From the sequence record NC_031127.1: 64,000 bases of DNA; one strand, 5' to 3'. A model generated the notes under the pieces. It was not told where the DNA came from. It was given only the letters and a program-made list of their open reading frames with translations, and searched no databases. How positions within the stretch are numbered: position 1 is the stretch's first letter; each line of letters begins with the position of its first letter. Of the stretch, positions 5,494 through 38,794 are shown in pieces. Both the position numbers and the translations under genes were made by a program.

Positions 5494-6210
5494 ATGACCC
5501 TGTTATTGAATCGCTTCGACCTGTCACCCCGTTACCCAACTTTACGTCATGACCCTAAACTGATTGCCGAAGTGGAAGACATTCGCTTGGCGGTATCCGA
5601 AGACCCGAACGGCGAAGACAAGATTTTCGTGGTCATTTATAAAGGTCAGGTTATCTCTGGCGTCTCTTTCAGTAAGCCCAGTTATCCGCGTGATGAAGAC
5701 AACCAACGTGAGCAACGTAACGCGGCATACACTGCGCTGAGTTATGCCTCATCCCACCTGATGGCAGTTACCCCCATCTTTGCAGAGCGTGCGGTGCTGG
5801 TAGGTCAGATGGTCGCGTTGTACACCCTGACTAACATGGACGAATTCTACAACGACGATCGTATTACGCAACGCCTGCAAGAAGACCCACGTAAAGCCCA
5901 CAACGCCTCTGACTGCAAGCTCGATGCCTTAGCGCTGTTGTCTGAGCTGTATCACGTTTGCCCCACCTTTGACAATAACGGCATCGTTGCCCAGTACGAA
6001 AACGTCAAACTGAACGTACTGACCTTGTGGGGAATTGAAAAGATTCGCTACAAGCTGACCGCCAAAGGTGGCACGTACGAACTGACTGCATATGTCGATG
6101 TCGGCTTCGAAGAAGACAGCCGCGACACGGTTGACAATTTTATGTCGCAGTTTGAGTTCCCGCTGCAATCCATCCCTGTTGACCAGAAAGAAGAAGGAGA
6201 AGACGAATAA
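5494..6210 (+). CDS. Hypothetical protein
   Basis: 238-aa ORF, SD AAGGA. Confidence 0.75.
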   Translation: MTLLLNRFDLSPRYPTLRHDPKLIAEVEDIRLAVSEDPNGEDKIFVVIYKGQVISGVSFSKPSYPRDEDNQREQRNAAYTALSYASSHLMAVTPIFAERAVLVGQMVALYTLTNMDEFYNDDRITQRLQEDPRKAHNASDCKLDALALLSELYHVCPTFDNNGIVAQYENVKLNVLTLWGIEKIRYKLTAKGGTYELTAYVDVGFEEDSRDTVDNFMSQFEFPLQSIPVDQKEEGEDE

Positions 6211-6602
6211 TGCGAAAGAGTCGTCTGTTACTGGCGTTAAAGTTTTTGTTTAAAGGTAACATTTTTAAGTGTCGTCACCGTATGGGACGTGTGAAGGATT
6301 TCCTGTACGGCCCAAAGAAATACCACCTCACAGAGCCACGTTGCCTGTGGGATGAGACACTCGACCACAAGTTCCGTGTGGTACGCTACCGCAGGGTATA
6401 CTGCTGGTACGGAAGACTCTACTCACCATTTCGTCGGACTCACCACAAAGGTCTGGAGTTGGAAAACGGGGTCATCGTGCCCCATGAAACCATCGCAGAT
6501 TATCTGGCAGCCCTGAAAAAGGCTGATGTAGTGTTTCCGCAATTAGTTGCGAACCTGAGAAAGGCGACCGACGAGTTGTGTAATTCACGCATCGAAGCCT
6601 AG
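6210..6602 (+). CDS. Hypothetical basic protein
   Basis: 130-aa ORF coupled to the previous gene by TAATG overlap. Confidence 0.7.
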   Translation: MRKSRLLLALKFLFKGNIFKCRHRMGRVKDFLYGPKKYHLTEPRCLWDETLDHKFRVVRYRRVYCWYGRLYSPFRRTHHKGLELENGVIVPHETIADYLAALKKADVVFPQLVANLRKATDELCNSRIEA

Positions 6603-6608
6603 TTGTAC

Positions 6609-6645
6609 CCCCAATCTCTTCGGAGGTTGGGGTCTTTATTTATTT
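6609..6645 (+). terminator. Intrinsic terminator (UUCG loop)
   Basis: ccccaatctc-ttcg-gaggttgggg followed by T tract. Confidence 0.7.
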
Positions 6646-6716
6646 TCGCAAAGAAAATAAAAGTCGGTTACTCCCCCGGCAAGGAGAGTAACCTTAATCA
6701 CATTGGAGTGACCAAT

Positions 6717-6860
6717 ATGAACAACTTTGTAAACCACTTACTGGCGCAAAAGAAGCGCACTGAGCAATACAACCAACGTGTGGCCGAGGTGCAACGCGCC
6801 CCAGCGCCGCGCTCACGGCTTAAAGGCTTAGGGGGTGAAATAGTATTCACTAAACGGTAA
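6717..6860 (+). CDS. Small hypothetical protein, 47 aa
   Basis: MNNFVNHLLAQKKRTEQY...; SD GGAG; 3' part of track ORF 6603..6860. Confidence 0.65.
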   Translation: MNNFVNHLLAQKKRTEQYNQRVAEVQRAPAPRSRLKGLGGEIVFTKR

Positions 6861-6877
6861 TTGATAAGATAACTAAC

Positions 6878-6903
6878 CTAGCCGGTGTTACAGCACCGGC
6901 TAG
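6878..6903. terminator. Hairpin between convergent genes
   Basis: ctagccggtg-ttacag-caccggctag, 10-bp stem. Confidence 0.55.
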
Positions 6904-6995
6904 TAATCCCACCATAGTAAGACGCTTATTTTTTTTGTCTCGGCAGGACACATAACTGCCCCTGCTGGAGACCGAAGTCTCCAGCTGAGTTAGGC

Positions 6996-8561
6996 TCAGA
7001 ATAAATCGTCGCCCATGCCACCGGTAAAGTGGTTGATAGAGGATGCCGTCACGGTCATCTCTTTGTCGCAATCCCAAGGTAGGATGCCAACGTCTGCAAA
7101 CGGTATAACAGTGTAATGATGTTTCTCATTGGTATCAATGATGGTACGGTGTTTACCACGTTGCACTTCTAAGAAGCTGTGACCGTTGACCACACGCTTG
7201 TTGAAGTACACCTCACCATCGGCTTCGTTATCCAGACTCGTACAGTTATCGTACAAGCCACGACCGGGCAGGTTCTTACAGAAGCCAACCGGGTCTACCG
7301 CTTTCAGACGTTTCCCTTCTGGAGAAATCTGGTGCGGTGCTAACAGGAAACCGTGGTTACGCACGACCTGAATGTTTCGGGCCATACGGTAAATCTCTTT
7401 GATGTCACTGCCTGCAATCCCGTTACCGTGTCCCGCTTTGTTGATGGTGCCAAGGTAGTCGGCACGAATCCCAACAACGTGGAAGCCGTCACGTTTGTAG
7501 TCAGTGATAAGGTCGTTCAGGTAATGCACTTTGAAATCGGTGTTCGTGTGTTTCTCAAACGAGTATTCCCACCCGTTCGCACGAATCTTACCAATCAGAT
7601 AATCAGCCATTTGCTGAACATGAGCAGCACGTTCTTCATCGGTGGCCGTCTCAGGCAGGGTCATTACCGGTGCAGCACCTTCAAAGTGACCGTAGATAGC
7701 CTGATAAGCGTAAGCGATGTTCACGTCCAGTTCGTTCTCAAGACTCAAGTCCAGAATCAATGGAGCCAAGTTACCTTTTACGTTCGCCATGACTTTTTCC
7801 GGTGTGTTAAACAACGGAACCGAGATAGCGGTCAAGAGACTAAACAGAGACTTACAGTTAAATGGCAGCGCAGGCATGAGCCACAATTCTTCGGTAATCC
7901 CTTTGTTACACCCCATCATTTGATTGATGGCTTTCCAACCGGTCTTCAAACCGTTACCGGCAACCTTACGGTTAATGTCGCTGAACGTCTTCACAAACGG
8001 TGCTCGGTCTGTGGTAATCAGCTTGTTCACCTGTGAAGGAATCTTATTATGAGAACGTTCACCGAACGTGGCCATCGATCCCGTCAGATCTTTCAGCGCT
8101 GTCTGGAGGTCAACGCGGGTTTCTGTTCCGTTCAACACGCCGAGTGTACGACCAAGGTATTGCTTTAACTGCACGCCTTGGATTGCCTGACGCAATTGGA
8201 AATAATATTGGGAGAGGGTTTTGTTCAGATAGTCGATACGTTCTTCTTCGGCTTCCGGCAATTCCTCAGCATCCATGAATTTCACAATCACATCGTATAG
8301 AGGGCGTGTTTGCGTGGTTGCCAGTTTCAAGCGCTTCATGACATTGGTGTGGTTGTATTCCATACCACCGTCGATGACTGATGTTATAATGTCTTTGATT
8401 TCAGCTAATGCCGAGCGCTCGTCACCTTCTTCGACGTAATCGGGGAGCTTGACCTCGTGGAGCACTTTTCTTATGACGTCATGATCTTTATCGGGCTCAG
8501 ACAGAAGGCTCTCTGCGTATAAGGCGGCTAAGGCTGTTATCAACATCATTTTACTATTCAT
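6996..8561 (-). CDS. dnaB: DnaB-like replicative helicase, phiKZ type
   Basis: LKTGWKAINQMMG, variant Walker A ALPFNCKS, LSLENE, ADYL, PHQIS, VQRGKHR; 521 aa; next to the capsid gene as in phiKZ-like genomes. Confidence 0.85.
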   Translation of the reverse strand: MNSKMMLITALAALYAESLLSEPDKDHDVIRKVLHEVKLPDYVEEGDERSALAEIKDIITSVIDGGMEYNHTNVMKRLKLATTQTRPLYDVIVKFMDAEELPEAEEERIDYLNKTLSQYYFQLRQAIQGVQLKQYLGRTLGVLNGTETRVDLQTALKDLTGSMATFGERSHNKIPSQVNKLITTDRAPFVKTFSDINRKVAGNGLKTGWKAINQMMGCNKGITEELWLMPALPFNCKSLFSLLTAISVPLFNTPEKVMANVKGNLAPLILDLSLENELDVNIAYAYQAIYGHFEGAAPVMTLPETATDEERAAHVQQMADYLIGKIRANGWEYSFEKHTNTDFKVHYLNDLITDYKRDGFHVVGIRADYLGTINKAGHGNGIAGSDIKEIYRMARNIQVVRNHGFLLAPHQISPEGKRLKAVDPVGFCKNLPGRGLYDNCTSLDNEADGEVYFNKRVVNGHSFLEVQRGKHRTIIDTNEKHHYTVIPFADVGILPWDCDKEMTVTASSINHFTGGMGDDLF

Positions 8562-25263: not shown

Positions 25264-25887
25264 ATGAATCTATTACAGATGCGCGTTCGCACGGCACTGA
25301 TATCTGCGACGGGGGTTCTGAACGCCATACCGAAGCTGCCTAAAATAGTGCTCGGTGATGAAATCAGAAAGCGGCTTATTGTCAGTATGCTTGAAGAACA
25401 GACGTGGGCGAAGTACAGAACACTTCCTGCGGGTTATTCACAAGTAAGGCCACCGTATGTGGGTCAAACGCTAGACATGCTTAAAACGTTGTTTAAGGGC
25501 GCTAGCGTTGACGATGTACAACATGCGTATCGGTGTCTGGCGAATGCGACAGACAAACTACTCGCTCGGAGCTATGGCTTATGGCCAGAAGGTTTACCCG
25601 AAGAGGGTTTCGATGACAGTTACCCTGCGGGTGCGCTGTTGTTTGACCACGGGGTGTCTTACCGATTCCACAAGAACTTCATCCATGCAGTTTGGCTACG
25701 TCCAACGGTAGACATGAAGGAAATGTCAGTTGCTTCCTACATCGACTTCATTTGCACACATTGCGGCGACGTCGACGTCAAGGGCTACACGGTGCGTGAA
25801 CTAACACCATCGATGCCTATCGAAGATTTCCTCGGCGATGTGCACACCGATTATTTGGAGAGGAAATTATGCTCTACATCGAAGTGA
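25264..25887 (+). CDS. Hypothetical protein
   Basis: ATG at 25264 after GGGGA, within track ORF 25240..25887. Confidence 0.7.
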   Translation: MNLLQMRVRTALISATGVLNAIPKLPKIVLGDEIRKRLIVSMLEEQTWAKYRTLPAGYSQVRPPYVGQTLDMLKTLFKGASVDDVQHAYRCLANATDKLLARSYGLWPEGLPEEGFDDSYPAGALLFDHGVSYRFHKNFIHAVWLRPTVDMKEMSVASYIDFICTHCGDVDVKGYTVRELTPSMPIEDFLGDVHTDYLERKLCSTSK

Positions 25888-26345
25888 GTCCTGATAAGGT
25901 CTCCGGTGACCTGTTCCCCGGATTGCGTAAATGGATTGATGACCAGAACGAACACCGAGGTCAACCCATCCGTGTGGTCATGGCAGTGGAAGATGATATT
26001 CCGATGGGTGTTATGGCCTATGCCGATGGCCAGATACTCTACATCTACGTACCGGAAGAATCTCGCCGGGGTGGTGTCGGTACGGCATTACTGAAACGGG
26101 CGGTGTTGGAAAGTAAGCGTTCGGTGGTCAGCGCAAAGGTGCACCCGTCGAACGTTGATGGATTATGTTTCATGCTCAAGTGCGGCTTCGCTATTGATGG
26201 TGTCATGATCGGTTTGGATAATGTACGTTATCATCGTATGACGAATAACATCGTCGTTGTACATACGCCGCCGGAGGAGAAGCACTTAGAAACGTTTGTG
26301 ACGAATGTGCCGATATTTTTATCGATGGCGGAAGGTAATTTCTAG
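25869..26345 (+). CDS. GNAT-family N-acetyltransferase
   Basis: Motif A YIYVPEESRRGGVGTALL; VHPSNVDGLCFMLKCGF. Confidence 0.85.
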   Translation: MLYIEVSPDKVSGDLFPGLRKWIDDQNEHRGQPIRVVMAVEDDIPMGVMAYADGQILYIYVPEESRRGGVGTALLKRAVLESKRSVVSAKVHPSNVDGLCFMLKCGFAIDGVMIGLDNVRYHRMTNNIVVVHTPPEEKHLETFVTNVPIFLSMAEGNF

Positions 26346-29761: not shown

Positions 29762-30238
29762 ATGAAAGTCGTTTTAGTTTCTAAGTTAACATCCCGGCTG
29801 GGCCAGAAGTTCCACGCCGAGTTAACCGATTTGCACAACAGTCTCTATAACGACCAGCAGGCCCGTCTTAAAGACCTGAATGGCCGAAGTGGCTTTAATG
29901 AAATCGATGATGTCTCCGAAGTCTGGAGCGAAGGACAGCAGGCTGCCGTGGCTGTAGACGACGAAGGTCGTGCGGTGGGGTTCCTGTCCTTCTCCATTCA
30001 GACCGGTCGGTCGAACATGGGCAGTAAGTGGTTGTGGATTTACAACTTCTATGTCAACAACGACCAACGTGGTAAAGGTGTCGGTCTTCTGCTGATGAAC
30101 GCGGTGCGTGACCACGGGAAAGCCAAAGGTTGTGGTTTCATGCAGCTCTACGTGCTGGACAATAACCAGCAAGCGATTGCGATGTACCAGAAGTTTGGTT
30201 TTCGCACCGAATATCGGGATATGGTGAAGGAGATTTAA
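29762..30238 (+). CDS. GNAT-family N-acetyltransferase
   Basis: FYVNNDQRGKGVGLLLM; LYVLDNNQQAIAMYQKFGF. Confidence 0.92.
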   Translation: MKVVLVSKLTSRLGQKFHAELTDLHNSLYNDQQARLKDLNGRSGFNEIDDVSEVWSEGQQAAVAVDDEGRAVGFLSFSIQTGRSNMGSKWLWIYNFYVNNDQRGKGVGLLLMNAVRDHGKAKGCGFMQLYVLDNNQQAIAMYQKFGFRTEYRDMVKEI

Positions 30239-33416: not shown

Positions 33417-33453
33417 ACCCCTCTTACCTTCGGGTAAGAGGGTTTTATTTTTT
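33417..33453 (+). terminator. Intrinsic terminator (cUUCGg loop)
   Basis: ccctcttacc-ttcg-ggtaagaggg plus T tract. Confidence 0.85.
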
Positions 33454-33491
33454 ACACCAACCAATAGTCCTATGCTTTATTCCACAAAATC

Positions 33492-34386: not shown

Positions 34387-34484
34387 AAGTAAAGTAAAGG
34401 GGGTCTTTCCCCCTTCTTATTTTTTGCCTTTTTACGCAACTTCCCTTTCCTGTGAATAACAAGAATTTGTTGCGGGGGAAATCG

Positions 34485-35492
34485 ATGCAATCGATAGCGC
34501 AATCAACCATCATTAAACCGTCGGTCGAACCGACAGAACAGCAAATCAATATCACCATTGAGCGACTCACTTGGGGTAGCGAAAAAGCACGCGAGTATTA
34601 TCATGCCTTTGGGTCACGTACCATTCCGATTAAACGGTTGAACGTTATCCTCAAAAATCCGCAGTACCAAGTCTTCGGTTTGCGTAACGACAGACATAAG
34701 CCGCTTGGGTATATCTCGGTCATTACCACCATGGGCGATGAAACACTCATCATTCACCATGCAGAAGAGATTATCTCTAAGTCTCTTAACAAAGTGGCGA
34801 TGATGATGTTGTTGGATCACGTCGGGTGCCGCTATGCGATGACGGTTGACGGGTCGTCTGATAACTTCGACTTCCGCAATCGCATGGGCTTTAAGCTGAT
34901 TGAAAACAACTGGATGGTGAACTGTAAACCGTACGAGAAACTTCCCATCGATAAACGGATTGTGGATGTCTCTGGTTTAGAGTCACTCAGCGAACATCAG
35001 CTTGAGCAACTTACCGGTTTAGTCCGCTACACCATCTACCGCGAAGGGCAGACTGATCCGTTTGGTCGGGAAATCTTCCGTGAAGTGTTACCAGAGTCGG
35101 TCATTGAACGTGGGCGCACCAGTCAGTATAAAACGCTGGTCTGGATGGATGCGGGGGATATTCTCGGCGTCGCACAACTGCAATACGCACAATGGGGTGA
35201 GGTTATCCTGAGTGGGGTTGGGGTTGATGGTTCCCATACGGGCAAGCGTATCGGGCGCAATCTGGTTGCCGCGGCAATTCAGAAAGCGGGCATGTCTCAC
35301 GAACACCTGATGGCCACCACCTTTGCAGACAATGGGCCAATGAACCACCTGTTTGGAAACCTCTTAGGTTGGGATATGTTGCCGGGGTCAATTGGCGTGG
35401 AGTTGGTTGAGAACGCGGTGAGCTGGAAGAAGTCGAAGAAGTATCTGGGTGTGACAGCCGGTCACGGTGCCCCAATGTACAAAGGGGATTGA
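34485..35492 (+). CDS. Tandem-domain GNAT acetyltransferase
   Basis: C-domain LSGVGVDGSHTGKRIGRNLV and TFADNGPMNHLF..LGW; N-domain ends NFDFRNRMGF; ATG 34485 preferred. Confidence 0.75.
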   Translation: MQSIAQSTIIKPSVEPTEQQINITIERLTWGSEKAREYYHAFGSRTIPIKRLNVILKNPQYQVFGLRNDRHKPLGYISVITTMGDETLIIHHAEEIISKSLNKVAMMMLLDHVGCRYAMTVDGSSDNFDFRNRMGFKLIENNWMVNCKPYEKLPIDKRIVDVSGLESLSEHQLEQLTGLVRYTIYREGQTDPFGREIFREVLPESVIERGRTSQYKTLVWMDAGDILGVAQLQYAQWGEVILSGVGVDGSHTGKRIGRNLVAAAIQKAGMSHEHLMATTFADNGPMNHLFGNLLGWDMLPGSIGVELVENAVSWKKSKKYLGVTAGHGAPMYKGD

Positions 35493-35493
35493 G

Positions 35494-36315
35494 ATGCGTT
35501 CTATTTTAAAATGGGTCGGTGGAAAGAAGCGAATCATCCAACCCCTGCGTAAGGTGTTCGGTGACACCGATTGTTTCGTCGAGCCGTTCGTGGGCGCAGG
35601 TTCGGTATTCATGAACACCAACTTCCCGAAGTACATTCTCTCTGACTACAATCCCGATTTGGTTGCGGTGCTCCGTTCTGCGATGGAAGCCCCGGACGAT
35701 TTGGTGGAAGCTTGTGAGCAACTCTGGACTAACGGGTGTGACCCTGAGGTTTATGATGCCCGCCGGGCGATACTCAACGACCGTGAGAACGTCACCGTCG
35801 AAGACACCATTGACCGGGCAGCTATCTTCATTTACCTGAACCGTCACGGGTACAATGGGTTGTGTCGCTACAACAAGTCGGGCGGGTACAACGTCCCTTA
35901 TGGCGACCACCCAACCAAACCGTATTTACCCAAAGAAGAAATTCATGCTTTCTGGAAACGCTGCACCGAATCCGAAGTAGACTTGCGCTGCTGTGGCTTT
36001 GAGGAGACGATTATCAATGCACCGAAAGGTTCACTGATTTACGCTGACCCTCCGTACATACCCAGCTCGAAGACTTCCTCGTTTGCGCAGTATCATAAAG
36101 CGTCCTTTAACCAACAACACCAACGCCAATTGGCTAAACTCCTGAAAGAAGCACATCTTCGTGGTTGTCGTGTAGTCCTGTCGAATTCTGATACGCTGCT
36201 CACCAAAGACATCTACTATGGCTTCCAATGGGAGACCGTAGAGGTGGGGCGGTATTTAGGGTCGAAGGCTGAAACCCGTGGACGTGTGAACGAGTTGATT
36301 GGTGTTCTGGAGTAA
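35494..36315 (+). CDS. dam: DNA adenine methyltransferase (Dam family)
   Basis: LKWVGGKK, EPFVGAGSVF, LSDYN, YLNRHGYNGLCRYNKSGGYNVPYG, DPPY, LSNSD. Confidence 0.95.
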   Translation: MRSILKWVGGKKRIIQPLRKVFGDTDCFVEPFVGAGSVFMNTNFPKYILSDYNPDLVAVLRSAMEAPDDLVEACEQLWTNGCDPEVYDARRAILNDRENVTVEDTIDRAAIFIYLNRHGYNGLCRYNKSGGYNVPYGDHPTKPYLPKEEIHAFWKRCTESEVDLRCCGFEETIINAPKGSLIYADPPYIPSSKTSSFAQYHKASFNQQHQRQLAKLLKEAHLRGCRVVLSNSDTLLTKDIYYGFQWETVEVGRYLGSKAETRGRVNELIGVLE

Positions 36316-36317
36316 CC

Positions 36318-37112
36318 ATGCACCTGTTATCGTATCCACCTGTGTACGAGCGACCTGTCCTCCTTAACGGTCGAGAGGTTGAAGTTGAACGTATCTGGCA
36401 AGGCATTAAACAAACCCATCCGTTAGCGATGGACGAGGAGCATTATCTGGTGGTGTCTAACACTCGCCAGACGCTCCTTGTATTAAGTGGCGAACGTCAC
36501 GGCGATGTGTTCCATATTCTCAATATGGTGCCGATGACCGACAAGCCCTTTTACCAGTGGAAAAACCTCATGCGTCAACTCGAAGTGGTTCACTTCGATG
36601 TGGTATTAGACCCAAGTGCTCATGTCGAGCACGGGATATGTCAGGCCATGGGACTTGAGTTCGTGACAAAGCGTGTGAAGTTTACCCCGTTTGATGTTTC
36701 GCGTTTCAACACGCGTGCGCCGATGATTCATCGTCAGGAGAACTGCTCTCTTGATGAGATGGAGCGTGTGTGTCAGATAACGAAGAAATCACTGCCGGGG
36801 TACAAGCACATCTTAAAGGAAGTGGCGTTCGGTTTTATGGAAACGTTGGTACGCAAACAAAACGACAAGATTACGTCGGTGTTGTTTGTTAGCCAGACAC
36901 CTAATACCGTCACCGTCGCTAACTACGTTTCTGTGTTTCATCAACAGGACAGGCAGTATGCGCAGGACTTCTCGGAGTTCTTCCGATACTTACTGAAACT
37001 GTGCGGGACACAGAAAAAGTCGTTGTATATCTCGCTGGACGCTAAGGCAGAGATACCGACTTACGATGGTATCACTCATGAGGTGGTGACACATCATTAC
37101 ACGATTGCTTAG
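36318..37112 (+). CDS. Degenerate tandem GNAT-like protein
   Basis: GNAT-like strand/helix pattern twice (HGICQAMGLEFV; NDKITSVLFV); no canonical acetyl-CoA loop. Confidence 0.5.
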   Translation: MHLLSYPPVYERPVLLNGREVEVERIWQGIKQTHPLAMDEEHYLVVSNTRQTLLVLSGERHGDVFHILNMVPMTDKPFYQWKNLMRQLEVVHFDVVLDPSAHVEHGICQAMGLEFVTKRVKFTPFDVSRFNTRAPMIHRQENCSLDEMERVCQITKKSLPGYKHILKEVAFGFMETLVRKQNDKITSVLFVSQTPNTVTVANYVSVFHQQDRQYAQDFSEFFRYLLKLCGTQKKSLYISLDAKAEIPTYDGITHEVVTHHYTIA

Positions 37113-37119
37113 GAGGGTT

Positions 37120-37881
37120 ATGAGAGAGATAACGAAAGAGGTGCTAGATGGTACGTATGACCAACCGCTCGGGCGTGGTGTATTAGACTGGCGTATCTTA
37201 GATCTGGCCCCCATGGAAACAAAACACATTGTTGAAGTGGGGCGTTGGCGTGTGTACCTAAAACGTCATCGTATCGAGGAAACAGCGCTACTGATTTCCG
37301 TTGACCGTTTTGGGGATGTGGAAGAACCACTGAATCTGCTCCCTGATGTGCTGGACGTCAAGGCAGTCTTTGCTTACTCGACGACGACTGCGGATGAAGC
37401 CCTTAAACGAATAGGGTTTGATCTGCATGCAGTGAAATATATCATTCCACCGCGCGAGGGTATCAGACCACCGCCGAAGATGATTGAAAACTGCCTGTTG
37501 ACGGACCAAGAAGCGGCGTCTTTTAAACTGGCCGCCATCGAAGAAGAAAGCATCCGTAAAGCGGCGGAAGCGTACGGTATGGGCACAGCTGCGTTTCACC
37601 GTGTCGACTTTGGGCACGGACGTACGGCAGTTGCGCTTATCAATATCGTCGATGAACATGCCACACTGCTGACGCACTGGGCAAGTGACTTCCAATCGCA
37701 AATGACGGTTGCTGACATCTTTAACTACATTGCCTCCTGTCAGAAGAACGGCGGGGAGTACGTGGTTAACCGTCAAACGTTCGATGACCCAACCCCTCTG
37801 GTGGAAACGCTGGAAACCCTCCACACCACGACACGCGGTGTTTATATTATCACAAAAGGAGTATCTACCCATGCAAACTAG
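37120..37881 (+). CDS. Degenerate tandem GNAT-like protein
   Basis: DEALKRIGFDL and GHGRTAVALINIVDEHATLL patterns; SD GGAGG; ATG 37120. Confidence 0.45.
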   Translation: MREITKEVLDGTYDQPLGRGVLDWRILDLAPMETKHIVEVGRWRVYLKRHRIEETALLISVDRFGDVEEPLNLLPDVLDVKAVFAYSTTTADEALKRIGFDLHAVKYIIPPREGIRPPPKMIENCLLTDQEAASFKLAAIEEESIRKAAEAYGMGTAAFHRVDFGHGRTAVALINIVDEHATLLTHWASDFQSQMTVADIFNYIASCQKNGGEYVVNRQTFDDPTPLVETLETLHTTTRGVYIITKGVSTHAN

Positions 37882-38167
37882 CATCAATCGTTCTGTCGCG
37901 CGTTCTAAAGAAGTGGTTTACGATGTGGTCTCTGGTGAAAAGACCCTGTTCCGTGCGGTGATTGTCGAGAACAACGAACTGCTCGTGGTCTATCCGGGTG
38001 GCGAGTTCTCTAAAGCGGAAAAGGTGGCACTGGATAAACTCATCACCAAAGCGAAACACCGCGACGGGATTTCTATCCACCGTGTGGTTAATGGTCGTGA
38101 GTTAGTGGAGAATGGCAAAGACTTAGAAGTGCGTCCCGTGAGCACGCAAGTCAACGCCTTTGTATGA
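37871..38167 (+). CDS. Hypothetical protein
   Basis: MQTSINRS..., 98 aa, SD AAGGAG, within track ORF 37709..38167. Confidence 0.75.
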   Translation: MQTSINRSVARSKEVVYDVVSGEKTLFRAVIVENNELLVVYPGGEFSKAEKVALDKLITKAKHRDGISIHRVVNGRELVENGKDLEVRPVSTQVNAFV

Positions 38168-38194
38168 CACCACTAACGTTATAGAGGAATCGCA

Positions 38195-38695
38195 ATGGAT
38201 GTTATCGATTTCGAACAGCTTCCACAGCACGACTTCGACCTCGGCGTCCGTGACATGGATTGCGGCTTCGAAGAAAAGGCGCGTGCGCTGTTCCAGAAAT
38301 ACGGCGAACTGATTATGGGTACCGACCATCCAGACATCACACTGGATGAGTTCGAGAAACTGATCGTTGGTCTCATCACGACCCGTGCACAGGACAGAGC
38401 GTTGCTGAACGAGTTGAACTTTACCACCGTGTCCCCCGCGGATGCTGCCGGTATCCTGTCGCAGTCCATCGTGCCGAACGATGAGATTCTCGACAAGGTT
38501 GCTGAGCTACGTGGCCCGTTCGACACAGCGGTAGAAGACTACGCGCAGCAGTTAGCGGAATCGGAATACGCGATGGTCGCCCCTGAGGGTGAGCAGCTGC
38601 CGTCTGATGAGCAAACTGAAACTGCCCGTCTGCGTCTTGCGCGATATGTCATTACCAGCGTGCTGGTTGATGACCGTGAAGATTGTCAGCTCTAA
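38195..38695 (+). CDS. Acidic hypothetical protein
   Basis: 166-aa ORF, SD GAGGA, terminator downstream. Confidence 0.75.
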   Translation: MDVIDFEQLPQHDFDLGVRDMDCGFEEKARALFQKYGELIMGTDHPDITLDEFEKLIVGLITTRAQDRALLNELNFTTVSPADAAGILSQSIVPNDEILDKVAELRGPFDTAVEDYAQQLAESEYAMVAPEGEQLPSDEQTETARLRLARYVITSVLVDDREDCQL

Positions 38696-38702
38696 TGAAA
38701 TG

Positions 38703-38735
38703 ACCTCACCTTCGGGTGGGGTTTATTTTTTTTTG
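38703..38735 (+). terminator. Intrinsic terminator (cUUCGg loop)
   Basis: acctcacc-ttcg-ggtggggt plus T tract. Confidence 0.8.
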
Positions 38736-38794
38736 CCTTTTTACAGAATAGCACCTATCTATGTCAAACCAAATAACCCTGAGGATTAAAAGCA

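Follow-up and report, generated by a model that had tools for sequence, protein, structure and literature searches.

Introduction

Why should the gene of a Dam methyltransferase stand within a run of genes for GCN5-related N-acetyltransferase (GNAT)-like proteins in a jumbo phage, and what could such a run of genes do? The question is raised by a locus of Erwinia phage vB_EamM_Huxley (NC_031127.1, 240.8 kb), an SPN3US-like jumbo phage of the genus Machinavirus, which lies in a stretch of 64,000 nucleotides (nt) referred to below as the window; window positions are obtained by subtracting 62000 from genome positions. A preliminary description of this stretch saw here an operon of four genes, three of them encoding proteins with two GNAT-like domains each and the fourth encoding Dam, and proposed a heteromeric acyltransferase with one catalytic and two scaffold subunits, linked through the methylase to DNA or nucleotide modification or to counter-defence. 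The account favored here, which we consider to have about an even chance of being correct, is that of a clade-restricted, duplicated family of tandem-GNAT proteins, comprising one probable acyltransferase and several paralogues that lack the cofactor motif, with a probable role in host takeover or counter-defence. The picture of the operon is also corrected, to a predicted unit of six genes in which gp116 is a dispensable member.

The bounds of the six genes were taken from the sequence and agree with the RefSeq annotation of Huxley. The letters G, X and Z denote gp116, gp118, gp119 and their counterparts in related phages, and Y denotes a further paralogue found in some of these.

34485-35492, plus strand: gp116 (G), 335 amino acids, annotated in RefSeq as "putative GCN5-related N-acetyltransferase"
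35494-36315, plus strand: gp117 (Dam), 273 amino acids, annotated in RefSeq as "DNA methyltransferase"
36318-37112, plus strand: gp118 (X), 264 amino acids, RefSeq "hypothetical protein"
37120-37881, plus strand: gp119 (Z), 253 amino acids, RefSeq "hypothetical protein"
37871-38167, plus strand: gp120, 98 amino acids, a small conserved protein (phrog_7896)
38195-38695, plus strand: gp121, 166 amino acids, a very acidic conserved protein, the final gene of the unit

Results

Tandem GNAT folds of gp118 and gp119

Neither gp118 nor gp119 could be assigned to a family in searches of Pfam (with whole proteins and with halves), NCBIfam and PADLOC, and both fall in PHROGs without assigned function (phrog_9941, phrog_15621). 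Sequence-profile searches of the PDB with the X and Y/Z alignments returned chance matches only, and word-index protein searches retrieved close relatives only. The gp118 family is tiny, with 8 representatives in a profile search of 1.84 billion representative proteins, and its members are strongly diverged, X orthologues sharing 20-27% identity.

Structure prediction with AlphaFold2 (AF2) was more informative. The model of gp118 (predicted local distance difference test, pLDDT, 91.3; predicted template-modelling score, pTM, 0.82) consists of two successive units of GNAT topology, with domains at residues ~1-130 and ~131-264, and the best model of gp119 (pLDDT 88.0, pTM 0.77) has domains at ~1-115 and ~116-253. 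In the secondary-structure strings of the models, both halves of both proteins follow the order beta1-alpha1-alpha2-beta2-beta3-beta4-alpha3-beta5-alpha4-beta6. When the gp118 model was compared with the PDB using Foldseek, 232 matches were obtained at an expect value (E) ≤ 0.001, the best of which are all two-domain GNATs aligned over ~250-300 columns, namely VipF (8e-12), 3tt2, MAB_4324 (described as a "tandem repeat GNAT"), ORF14, 3frm, Eis, WecD and MshD. The gp119 model likewise matched VipF best (4.6e-8 over 251 columns), together with 3iwg, 3frm, ORF14, WecD and MshD. For both models the Foldseek probability reached 1.0 for dozens of GNAT crystal structures, and the alignments with tandem GNATs covered 246-300 columns. 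These predictions support the adoption of tandem-GNAT folds by gp118 and gp119, in agreement with the two GNAT-like domains that had been proposed for each.

A probable acyltransferase encoded by gp116

In gp116, residues 195-295 match Acetyltransf_1 (PF00583; E=1.8e-8, 35.1 bits versus a cutoff of 20.7), which is its sole Pfam GNAT match. A profile of five gp116 orthologues retrieved GNATs only from the PDB, VipF and ORF14 among them, and aligned with these through its C-terminal half only, so that a C-terminal GNAT domain is predicted at residues ~161-335. The N-terminal half (~155-160 residues) matched no family by sequence when searched alone; residues ~1-160 are probably a degenerate GNAT domain. 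Indirect support for a two-domain architecture of the gp116 family itself comes from the model of the orthologue of phage Kwan in the BFVD library of viral models, to which the gp118 model aligns over 274 columns (E=4e-14, template-modelling score, TM, 0.58), and from a collinear hhalign match between the gp116 and gp118 families; this second domain of gp116, which the preliminary description had also listed, thus appears through relatives.

The feature that sets gp116 apart is the loop expected to bind the pyrophosphate of acetyl-coenzyme A (acetyl-CoA):

35238-35255, plus strand: degenerate acetyl-CoA pyrophosphate loop of gp116, T-G-K-R-I-G, residues 252-257, inside the Pfam GNAT match

In the family alignment H251, G257, R258, L260 and A263 are invariant, R258 directly following the loop, and both the motif-A region and the N..H-L-F/Y motif-B region are kept. 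The strict motif Q/RxxGxG/A is present in the gp116 orthologues of SPN3US (RKRGIG) and pEa_SNUABM_29 (QRKGIG), a relaxed form occurs in ChrisDB and Kwan, and the loop of Huxley is degenerate. Taken together, these features make gp116 a probable acyl-CoA N-acyltransferase, and a functional CoA site in its C-terminal domain is plausible. A search of IMG/VR for loci of the gp116 family recovered known isolates only.

Absence of the cofactor loop in gp118, gp119 and Y

No glycine-containing loop is found at the predicted beta4-alpha3 junctions of gp118 (residues 73-80 and 206-211) or gp119 (64-73 and 189-190), and the motif Q/R-x-x-G-x-G/A is absent from this junction in every member of the X and Y families as well as in gp119. 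The statement that gp116 alone keeps a recognizable acetyl-CoA loop was therefore correct, yet even this loop is degenerate in Huxley. Near the N-terminus of gp119, the hexapeptide QPLGRG (residues 15-20; window 37162-37179) formally matches the CoA motif, but it lies in a predicted coil; it is conserved in the Z proteins of Machinavirus and absent in those of Wellingtonvirus.

Relationships among the paralogues and selection

Sequence similarity between the GNAT-fold proteins of the locus is faint. In BLASTP comparisons gp116 matched neither gp118 nor gp119, and gp118 and gp119 shared one weak match of 30 residues (E=0.001). Comparison of profiles gave E=1.6e-4 for X versus Y/Z and E=0.022 for X versus G, the latter over 197 columns across both domains; the alignments are weak but collinear, N-terminal domains pairing best with N-terminal domains and C-terminal with C-terminal ones. 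In an all-against-all comparison of single domains with hhalign, the best pairs were the N-terminal domains of X and Y (E=0.0014) and those of Z and Y (E=0.002). Within BFVD, the nearest neighbor of the gp118 model outside its own family is the Kwan gp116 orthologue, followed by other GNATs of this phage group and then by the Y protein of phiEaH2 (E=5.9e-9). From this pattern we infer an old series of tandem duplications that produced G, X, Y and Z.

All of these genes are under constraint. In comparison with two relatives, purifying selection is strong on gp116-gp121 and on the upstream gp115, the ratio of nonsynonymous to synonymous substitution rates (dN/dS) being 0.035-0.097 across gp116-gp119 at dS of 0.39-1.76 (gp116, 0.05; gp118, 0.07; gp119, 0.07-0.10); gp116-gp121 are real genes.

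Gene order in related phages and the case for a heteromeric enzyme

The region 34400-38200 of the window is 100% identical to Huxley and 82-99.8% identical to nine close relatives. Gene order was scored with tblastn in a broader set of 14 related loci, comprising Machinavirus (two types), Seoulvirus, Wellingtonvirus, Erskinevirus and one metagenomic lineage, the last represented by a 239.5-kb contig whose gp118 relative is among the most distant ones recovered. The order (G)-Dam-X-(Y)(Z)-small-acidic, in which the members in brackets vary, is kept in all 14 loci:

Huxley-like Machinavirus, Wellingtonvirus and the metagenomic lineage: X and Z after Dam, G present
Seoulvirus: X and Y after Dam, G present
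ChrisDB-like Machinavirus: X, Y and Z after Dam, G present
Erskinevirus (Asesino, phiEaH2): X and Y after Dam, G absent

Thus Huxley carries Z only, and SPN3US carries Y only, as a downstream paralogue besides X. Y-type and Z-type genes both follow X in ChrisDB (gp123 and gp124; locus 5905-7463), Caitlin, pEa_SNUABM_4 and pEa_SNUABM_9. No Erskinevirus occurs among the 48 phage records matching gp116, and no remnant of gp116 was found near dam in Asesino or phiEaH2.

These data bear directly on the proposal that gp116 is the catalytic subunit of a heteromeric acyltransferase in which gp118 and gp119 serve as scaffold or specificity subunits. Such an enzyme would fit the fold common to the three proteins, the retention of the CoA loop by gp116 only, the translational coupling of the genes (spacers of 1-7 nt, overlaps in relatives) and the presence of at least one X and one Y or Z in every locus; complexes of a catalytic and an auxiliary GNAT protein do exist, the eukaryotic Nat complexes being an example. 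Erskinevirus, however, retains Dam-X-Y-small-acidic without any gp116 homologue, and the set of paralogues varies among X+Z, X+Y and X+Y+Z, which together argue against a fixed heterotrimer that always depends on gp116 for catalysis. Spacing points in the same direction: G and Dam are separated by 1 to ~80 nt, loosely so in relatives (30-80 nt), whereas the Dam-X-Y/Z-small junctions are tight, at 0-14 nt or overlapping. A heteromer of this composition is accordingly quite unlikely, and a smaller complex formed by the X-Y/Z pair may exist. The interpretation given in the preliminary description is partly supported: its statements on folds and motifs are borne out, and its model of one catalytic and two scaffold subunits is not supported.

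Dam and the question of DNA modification

The methyltransferase is the most readily classified protein of the locus. The gp117 sequence matches PF02086 (D12 methyltransferase) with E=1e-51 and, over its full length, TIGR00571 (dam) with 235.9 bits versus a curated cutoff of 114.85, and its translation shows the DPPY catalytic and FxGxG S-adenosylmethionine (SAM) motifs. Among solved structures E. coli Dam (2g1p, E=1e-57) comes closest, T4 Dam being much farther away (E=1e-9). On these matches gp117 is classified as an E. coli-Dam-like N6-adenine DNA methyltransferase of the Dam family, for which the match to the E. coli enzyme predicts GATC specificity; its much greater proximity to E. coli Dam than to T4 Dam suggests that the gene was captured from an enterobacterial source. 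Methyltransferase matches for Dam were all that PADLOC returned. GATC is strongly depleted in the window, with 92 sites observed versus 231 ± 13 expected from dinucleotide-preserving shuffles, beside this E. coli-like Dam, and the depletion shows that the site is under selection.

The position of Dam, directly before X, is fixed in every relative examined and was nowhere seen to vary independently of the gp118 and gp119 genes. The link between Dam and the GNAT-fold genes is physical, through a shared operon. A functional link, as had been suggested, draws no support from synteny, because collinearity is genome-wide: in most of these phages the flanks are equally collinear, with genes for a thymidylate kinase and a helix-turn-helix (HTH) protein upstream and small genes downstream.

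Could Dam and the GNAT-fold proteins nevertheless act on one substrate, for instance in a Mom-like acylation of adenine or in another modification at or near GATC, with the motif-less paralogues using a donor other than CoA or serving as readers? The arrangement Dam-X-Y/Z-small does form an invariant tight core in four genera and one metagenomic lineage, and the GATC depletion would suit such a module. There is also precedent: Mom of phage Mu is a GNAT-superfamily protein that modifies adenine N6 and has historically been linked to Dam, and for some jumbo phages a GNAT-based modification of DNA has been predicted (PMC7824862). The conserved core is, however, equally explained by collinearity of the whole genomes. 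No DNA-binding domain was found, and the X, Y and Z proteins are neutral to acidic (isoelectric point, pI, 4.6-7.1), which is atypical of DNA-binding proteins. Literature searches brought up no account of SPN3US-like phages with hypermodified DNA. As to Mom itself, the protein of Salmonella phage FSL SP-031 is a marginal fold match to the gp118 model (E=3.8e-3, rank 37, TM 0.24), the family searches (Pfam, PHROG) gave no sequence-level match to Mom, and no specific similarity to the Mom family was found. A module of this kind is given only a slim chance.

A donor other than CoA is hinted at by the aminoacyl-tRNA-using, tandem-GNAT-fold enzymes, since the gp118 model also matched A-PGS (4v35) and MprF (9j8q) at ranks 36-38 (E ~3e-7), below the CoA-dependent tandem GNATs, and a viral model of FemAB (E=2.3e-4). 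The resemblance to FemABX, A-PGS and MprF is best taken as a model-based lead toward an alternative donor. By fold, FemABX and the aminoacyl-phosphatidylglycerol synthases did not match more closely than the CoA-dependent GNATs.

Boundaries of the transcription unit

The spacers between gp116, gp117, gp118 and gp119 are 1, 2 and 7 nt long, as had been reported and as both the sequence and RefSeq confirm, and gp119 and gp120 overlap by 11 nt. Such tight spacing is not distinctive, because similar packing is usual in this region (2 nt and 0 nt around gp108). The predicted extent of the unit is marked by the following signals:

34397-34436, plus strand: a terminator-like hairpin, rich in G+C and with a T-run (34397-34415), which marks the unit's upstream boundary and is followed directly by CTTTTTACG, a candidate phage promoter motif
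38702-38745, plus strand: another terminator-like hairpin, also with a T-run (38702-38723), which marks the unit's downstream boundary and is followed by the next motif, CTTTTTACA
33419-33456, 34397-34436 and 38702-38745: repeated modules of hairpin terminator and YTTTTTACR, identified by a terminator scan and a motif scan

The motif YTTTTTACR has six matches on both strands of the window, five of them on the plus strand, and three of these five stand directly after terminator hairpins. A hairpin with TTTTTAC is kept upstream of the gp116-orthologous gene in SPN3US, ChrisDB, Caitlin and Kwan, which makes YTTTTTACR a candidate promoter of a phage RNA polymerase. In SPN3US and Kwan strong terminators flank the equivalent six genes and none lies between them. 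Since Huxley, SPN3US and Kwan all have these six genes enclosed by terminators, the transcription unit, as read from these signals, is gp116-gp121 and longer than the four-gene operon described before.

The last two genes and further GNATs of the phage

The small and the acidic gene are as constant as Dam and X, a gp120-type gene following Y or Z and a gp121 orthologue being present in all 14 related loci. Neither protein could be classified: gp120 has no Pfam or PDB match, and gp121 has no family, Pfam or PDB match. The gp121 protein has a pI of 4.1 and a net charge of -23, and its orthologues SPN3US gp109 and Kwan gp136 have charges of -23 and -21. This charge profile resembles that of DNA-mimic anti-restriction proteins.

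A bolder proposal would treat Dam-X-(Y/Z)-gp120-gp121 as a dedicated module for DNA modification or anti-restriction, in which the GNAT-fold proteins would use a non-CoA donor or read N6-methyladenine, so as to place or shield a mark on the phage DNA, and gp121 would be a DNA-mimic inhibitor. If true, the module would be an epigenetic system of counter-defence, not described before, in jumbo phages of the nucleus-forming type; we give it a very slim chance.

Two further, single-domain GNATs are encoded within 9 kb upstream, namely gp101 (25869-26345, Pfam E=2e-5) and gp108 (29762-30238, Pfam E=1e-19), so that, with the three tandem GNATs, at least five GNAT-fold genes lie in 12 kb. Another GNAT-like family of ~213-215 amino acids was noticed in these phages through Foldseek comparison with viral models (E 1e-7 to 1e-6); its members include A0A1B2IDM8 of Huxley (214 amino acids), for which no open reading frame of 214 codons was found in the window, and A0A1B2IE03 of Kwan (215 amino acids).

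This abundance is relevant to the view that each GNAT-fold protein is an independent effector with its own target among the proteins or metabolites of the host, duplication and insertion having brought the genes and Dam together by accident. Several GNATs per genome are common in jumbo phages and have been predicted to modify host proteins (PMC7824862); in the present locus, copy number varies, G has been lost in one lineage and more single-domain GNATs (gp101, gp108) lie nearby. The view overlaps largely with the one preferred here, the sole difference being that X and Z are assumed to be active, yet they lack the cofactor motif. It must also accommodate an order and a tight coupling that have been kept over the deep divergence of the X orthologues (20-27% identity), and as a separate explanation it is unlikely.

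Discussion

A proposed explanation and its weak points

The explanation that we prefer is that the unit gp116-gp121 grew up around a family of two-domain GNAT-fold proteins that is restricted to this clade and arose by tandem duplication. Most likely gp116 would be the working member, an acyl-CoA-dependent N-acyltransferase with its predicted cofactor site in the C-terminal domain and, by analogy with other tandem GNATs, a degenerate N-terminal domain as its intramolecular partner. The proteins gp118, gp119 and the Y paralogue would be old duplicates in which the fold was kept under purifying selection and the pyrophosphate-binding loop was lost in both domains; gp118 and gp119 most likely act without acetyl-CoA, either as pseudoenzymes that bind a ligand or a protein or as enzymes that use another donor. 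Dam is probably an acquisition, its gene having come to lie between the first and the second paralogue; it is predicted to be co-transcribed with them, though not necessarily to share their pathway, and could be a co-transcribed passenger or fulfil an independent anti-restriction function. Host takeover or counter-defence is the likely role, given that the unit combines a methylase with a family of acyltransferases and ends with a strongly acidic protein.

Several points weigh against this explanation. The alignments behind the AF2 models were shallow (10 sequences for gp118, 12 for gp119), and the five gp119 models span pLDDT 68.6-88.0, models 4 and 5 being weaker. The homology of G to X, Y and Z rests on similarity of fold and on adjacency and not on significant sequence similarity: every pair that involves G was insignificant in the domain-level hhalign comparison, so that sequence cannot prove paralogy. 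The TGKRIG of Huxley gp116 misses even the relaxed pattern of the motif, and this particular protein may itself be impaired. Conversely, GNATs bind CoA largely through backbone amides; as these do most of the binding, the missing glycine motif is no proof that gp118, gp119 and Y have lost it. That the unit serves counter-defence is a guess made from its gene content, and SPN3US gp104-gp107 are unmentioned in the papers and supplements consulted on the virion and the essential genes of SPN3US. The six genes of the unit correspond to SPN3US gp104-gp109, in a numbering in which gp100 is thymidylate kinase, and no paper treating gp116-gp121 or their orthologues was found.

Whatever the role of the locus, phrog_9941, phrog_15621 and the related SPN3US gp107-like family can now be assigned to the GNAT superfamily, as two-domain members that lack the cofactor motif. 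In this way two or three new, highly diverged families are added to the superfamily and a conserved six-gene unit is defined, in which a small, fast-diverging array of paralogues has been kept beside a probable acyltransferase and Dam across at least four genera of SPN3US-like jumbo phages. The array may serve as a starting point for studies of the evolution of pseudoenzymes in phages and of any acyl modification that these phages may impose on the host or on themselves.

Comparison with known systems

Among phage GNAT-fold proteins that act against host defence, the obvious points of reference are Mom of phage Mu, an adenine-N6 acyl modifier of the GNAT superfamily that depends on Dam for its expression, and the GNAT anti-CRISPR AcrVA5. 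Both are single-domain proteins, in contrast to the tandem arrangement predicted for gp116, gp118 and gp119. Mom was matched weakly, as described above, and AcrVA5, which the preliminary description had cited as an example, appeared neither among the 50 matches listed for each Foldseek search of the PDB nor in the PDB sequence-search matches.

The methyltransferase gp117 resembles the E. coli Dam/DpnM family (TIGR00571) in its full-length match and in its DPPY and FxGxG motifs. Unlike E. coli Dam, it is phage-encoded and found in a genome with a 2.5-fold depletion of GATC.

As a member of the GNAT superfamily (Acetyltransf_1), gp116 exceeds the Pfam threshold in its C-terminal domain, but its loop reads T-G-K-R-I-G and not Q/R-x-x-G-x-G/A. 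The closest structural parallels to gp118 and gp119 are VipF of Legionella (6wqb, 6wqc, 7wx5), ORF14 of the clavulanate pathway (2wpw), MAB_4324 of M. abscessus (7q3a) and the mycothiol synthase MshD (2c27, 1ozp), which carry two GNAT domains in a chain of ~250-330 residues and are the best Foldseek matches of both phage proteins over nearly their whole length. At 8-14% identity, the TM values are only 0.45-0.5 and the root-mean-square deviation is high, and the packing of the two domains would therefore differ from that of the solved tandem GNATs. The phage proteins further depart from these in lacking the CoA loop in both domains and in being encoded, three tandem proteins side by side, in a single operon.

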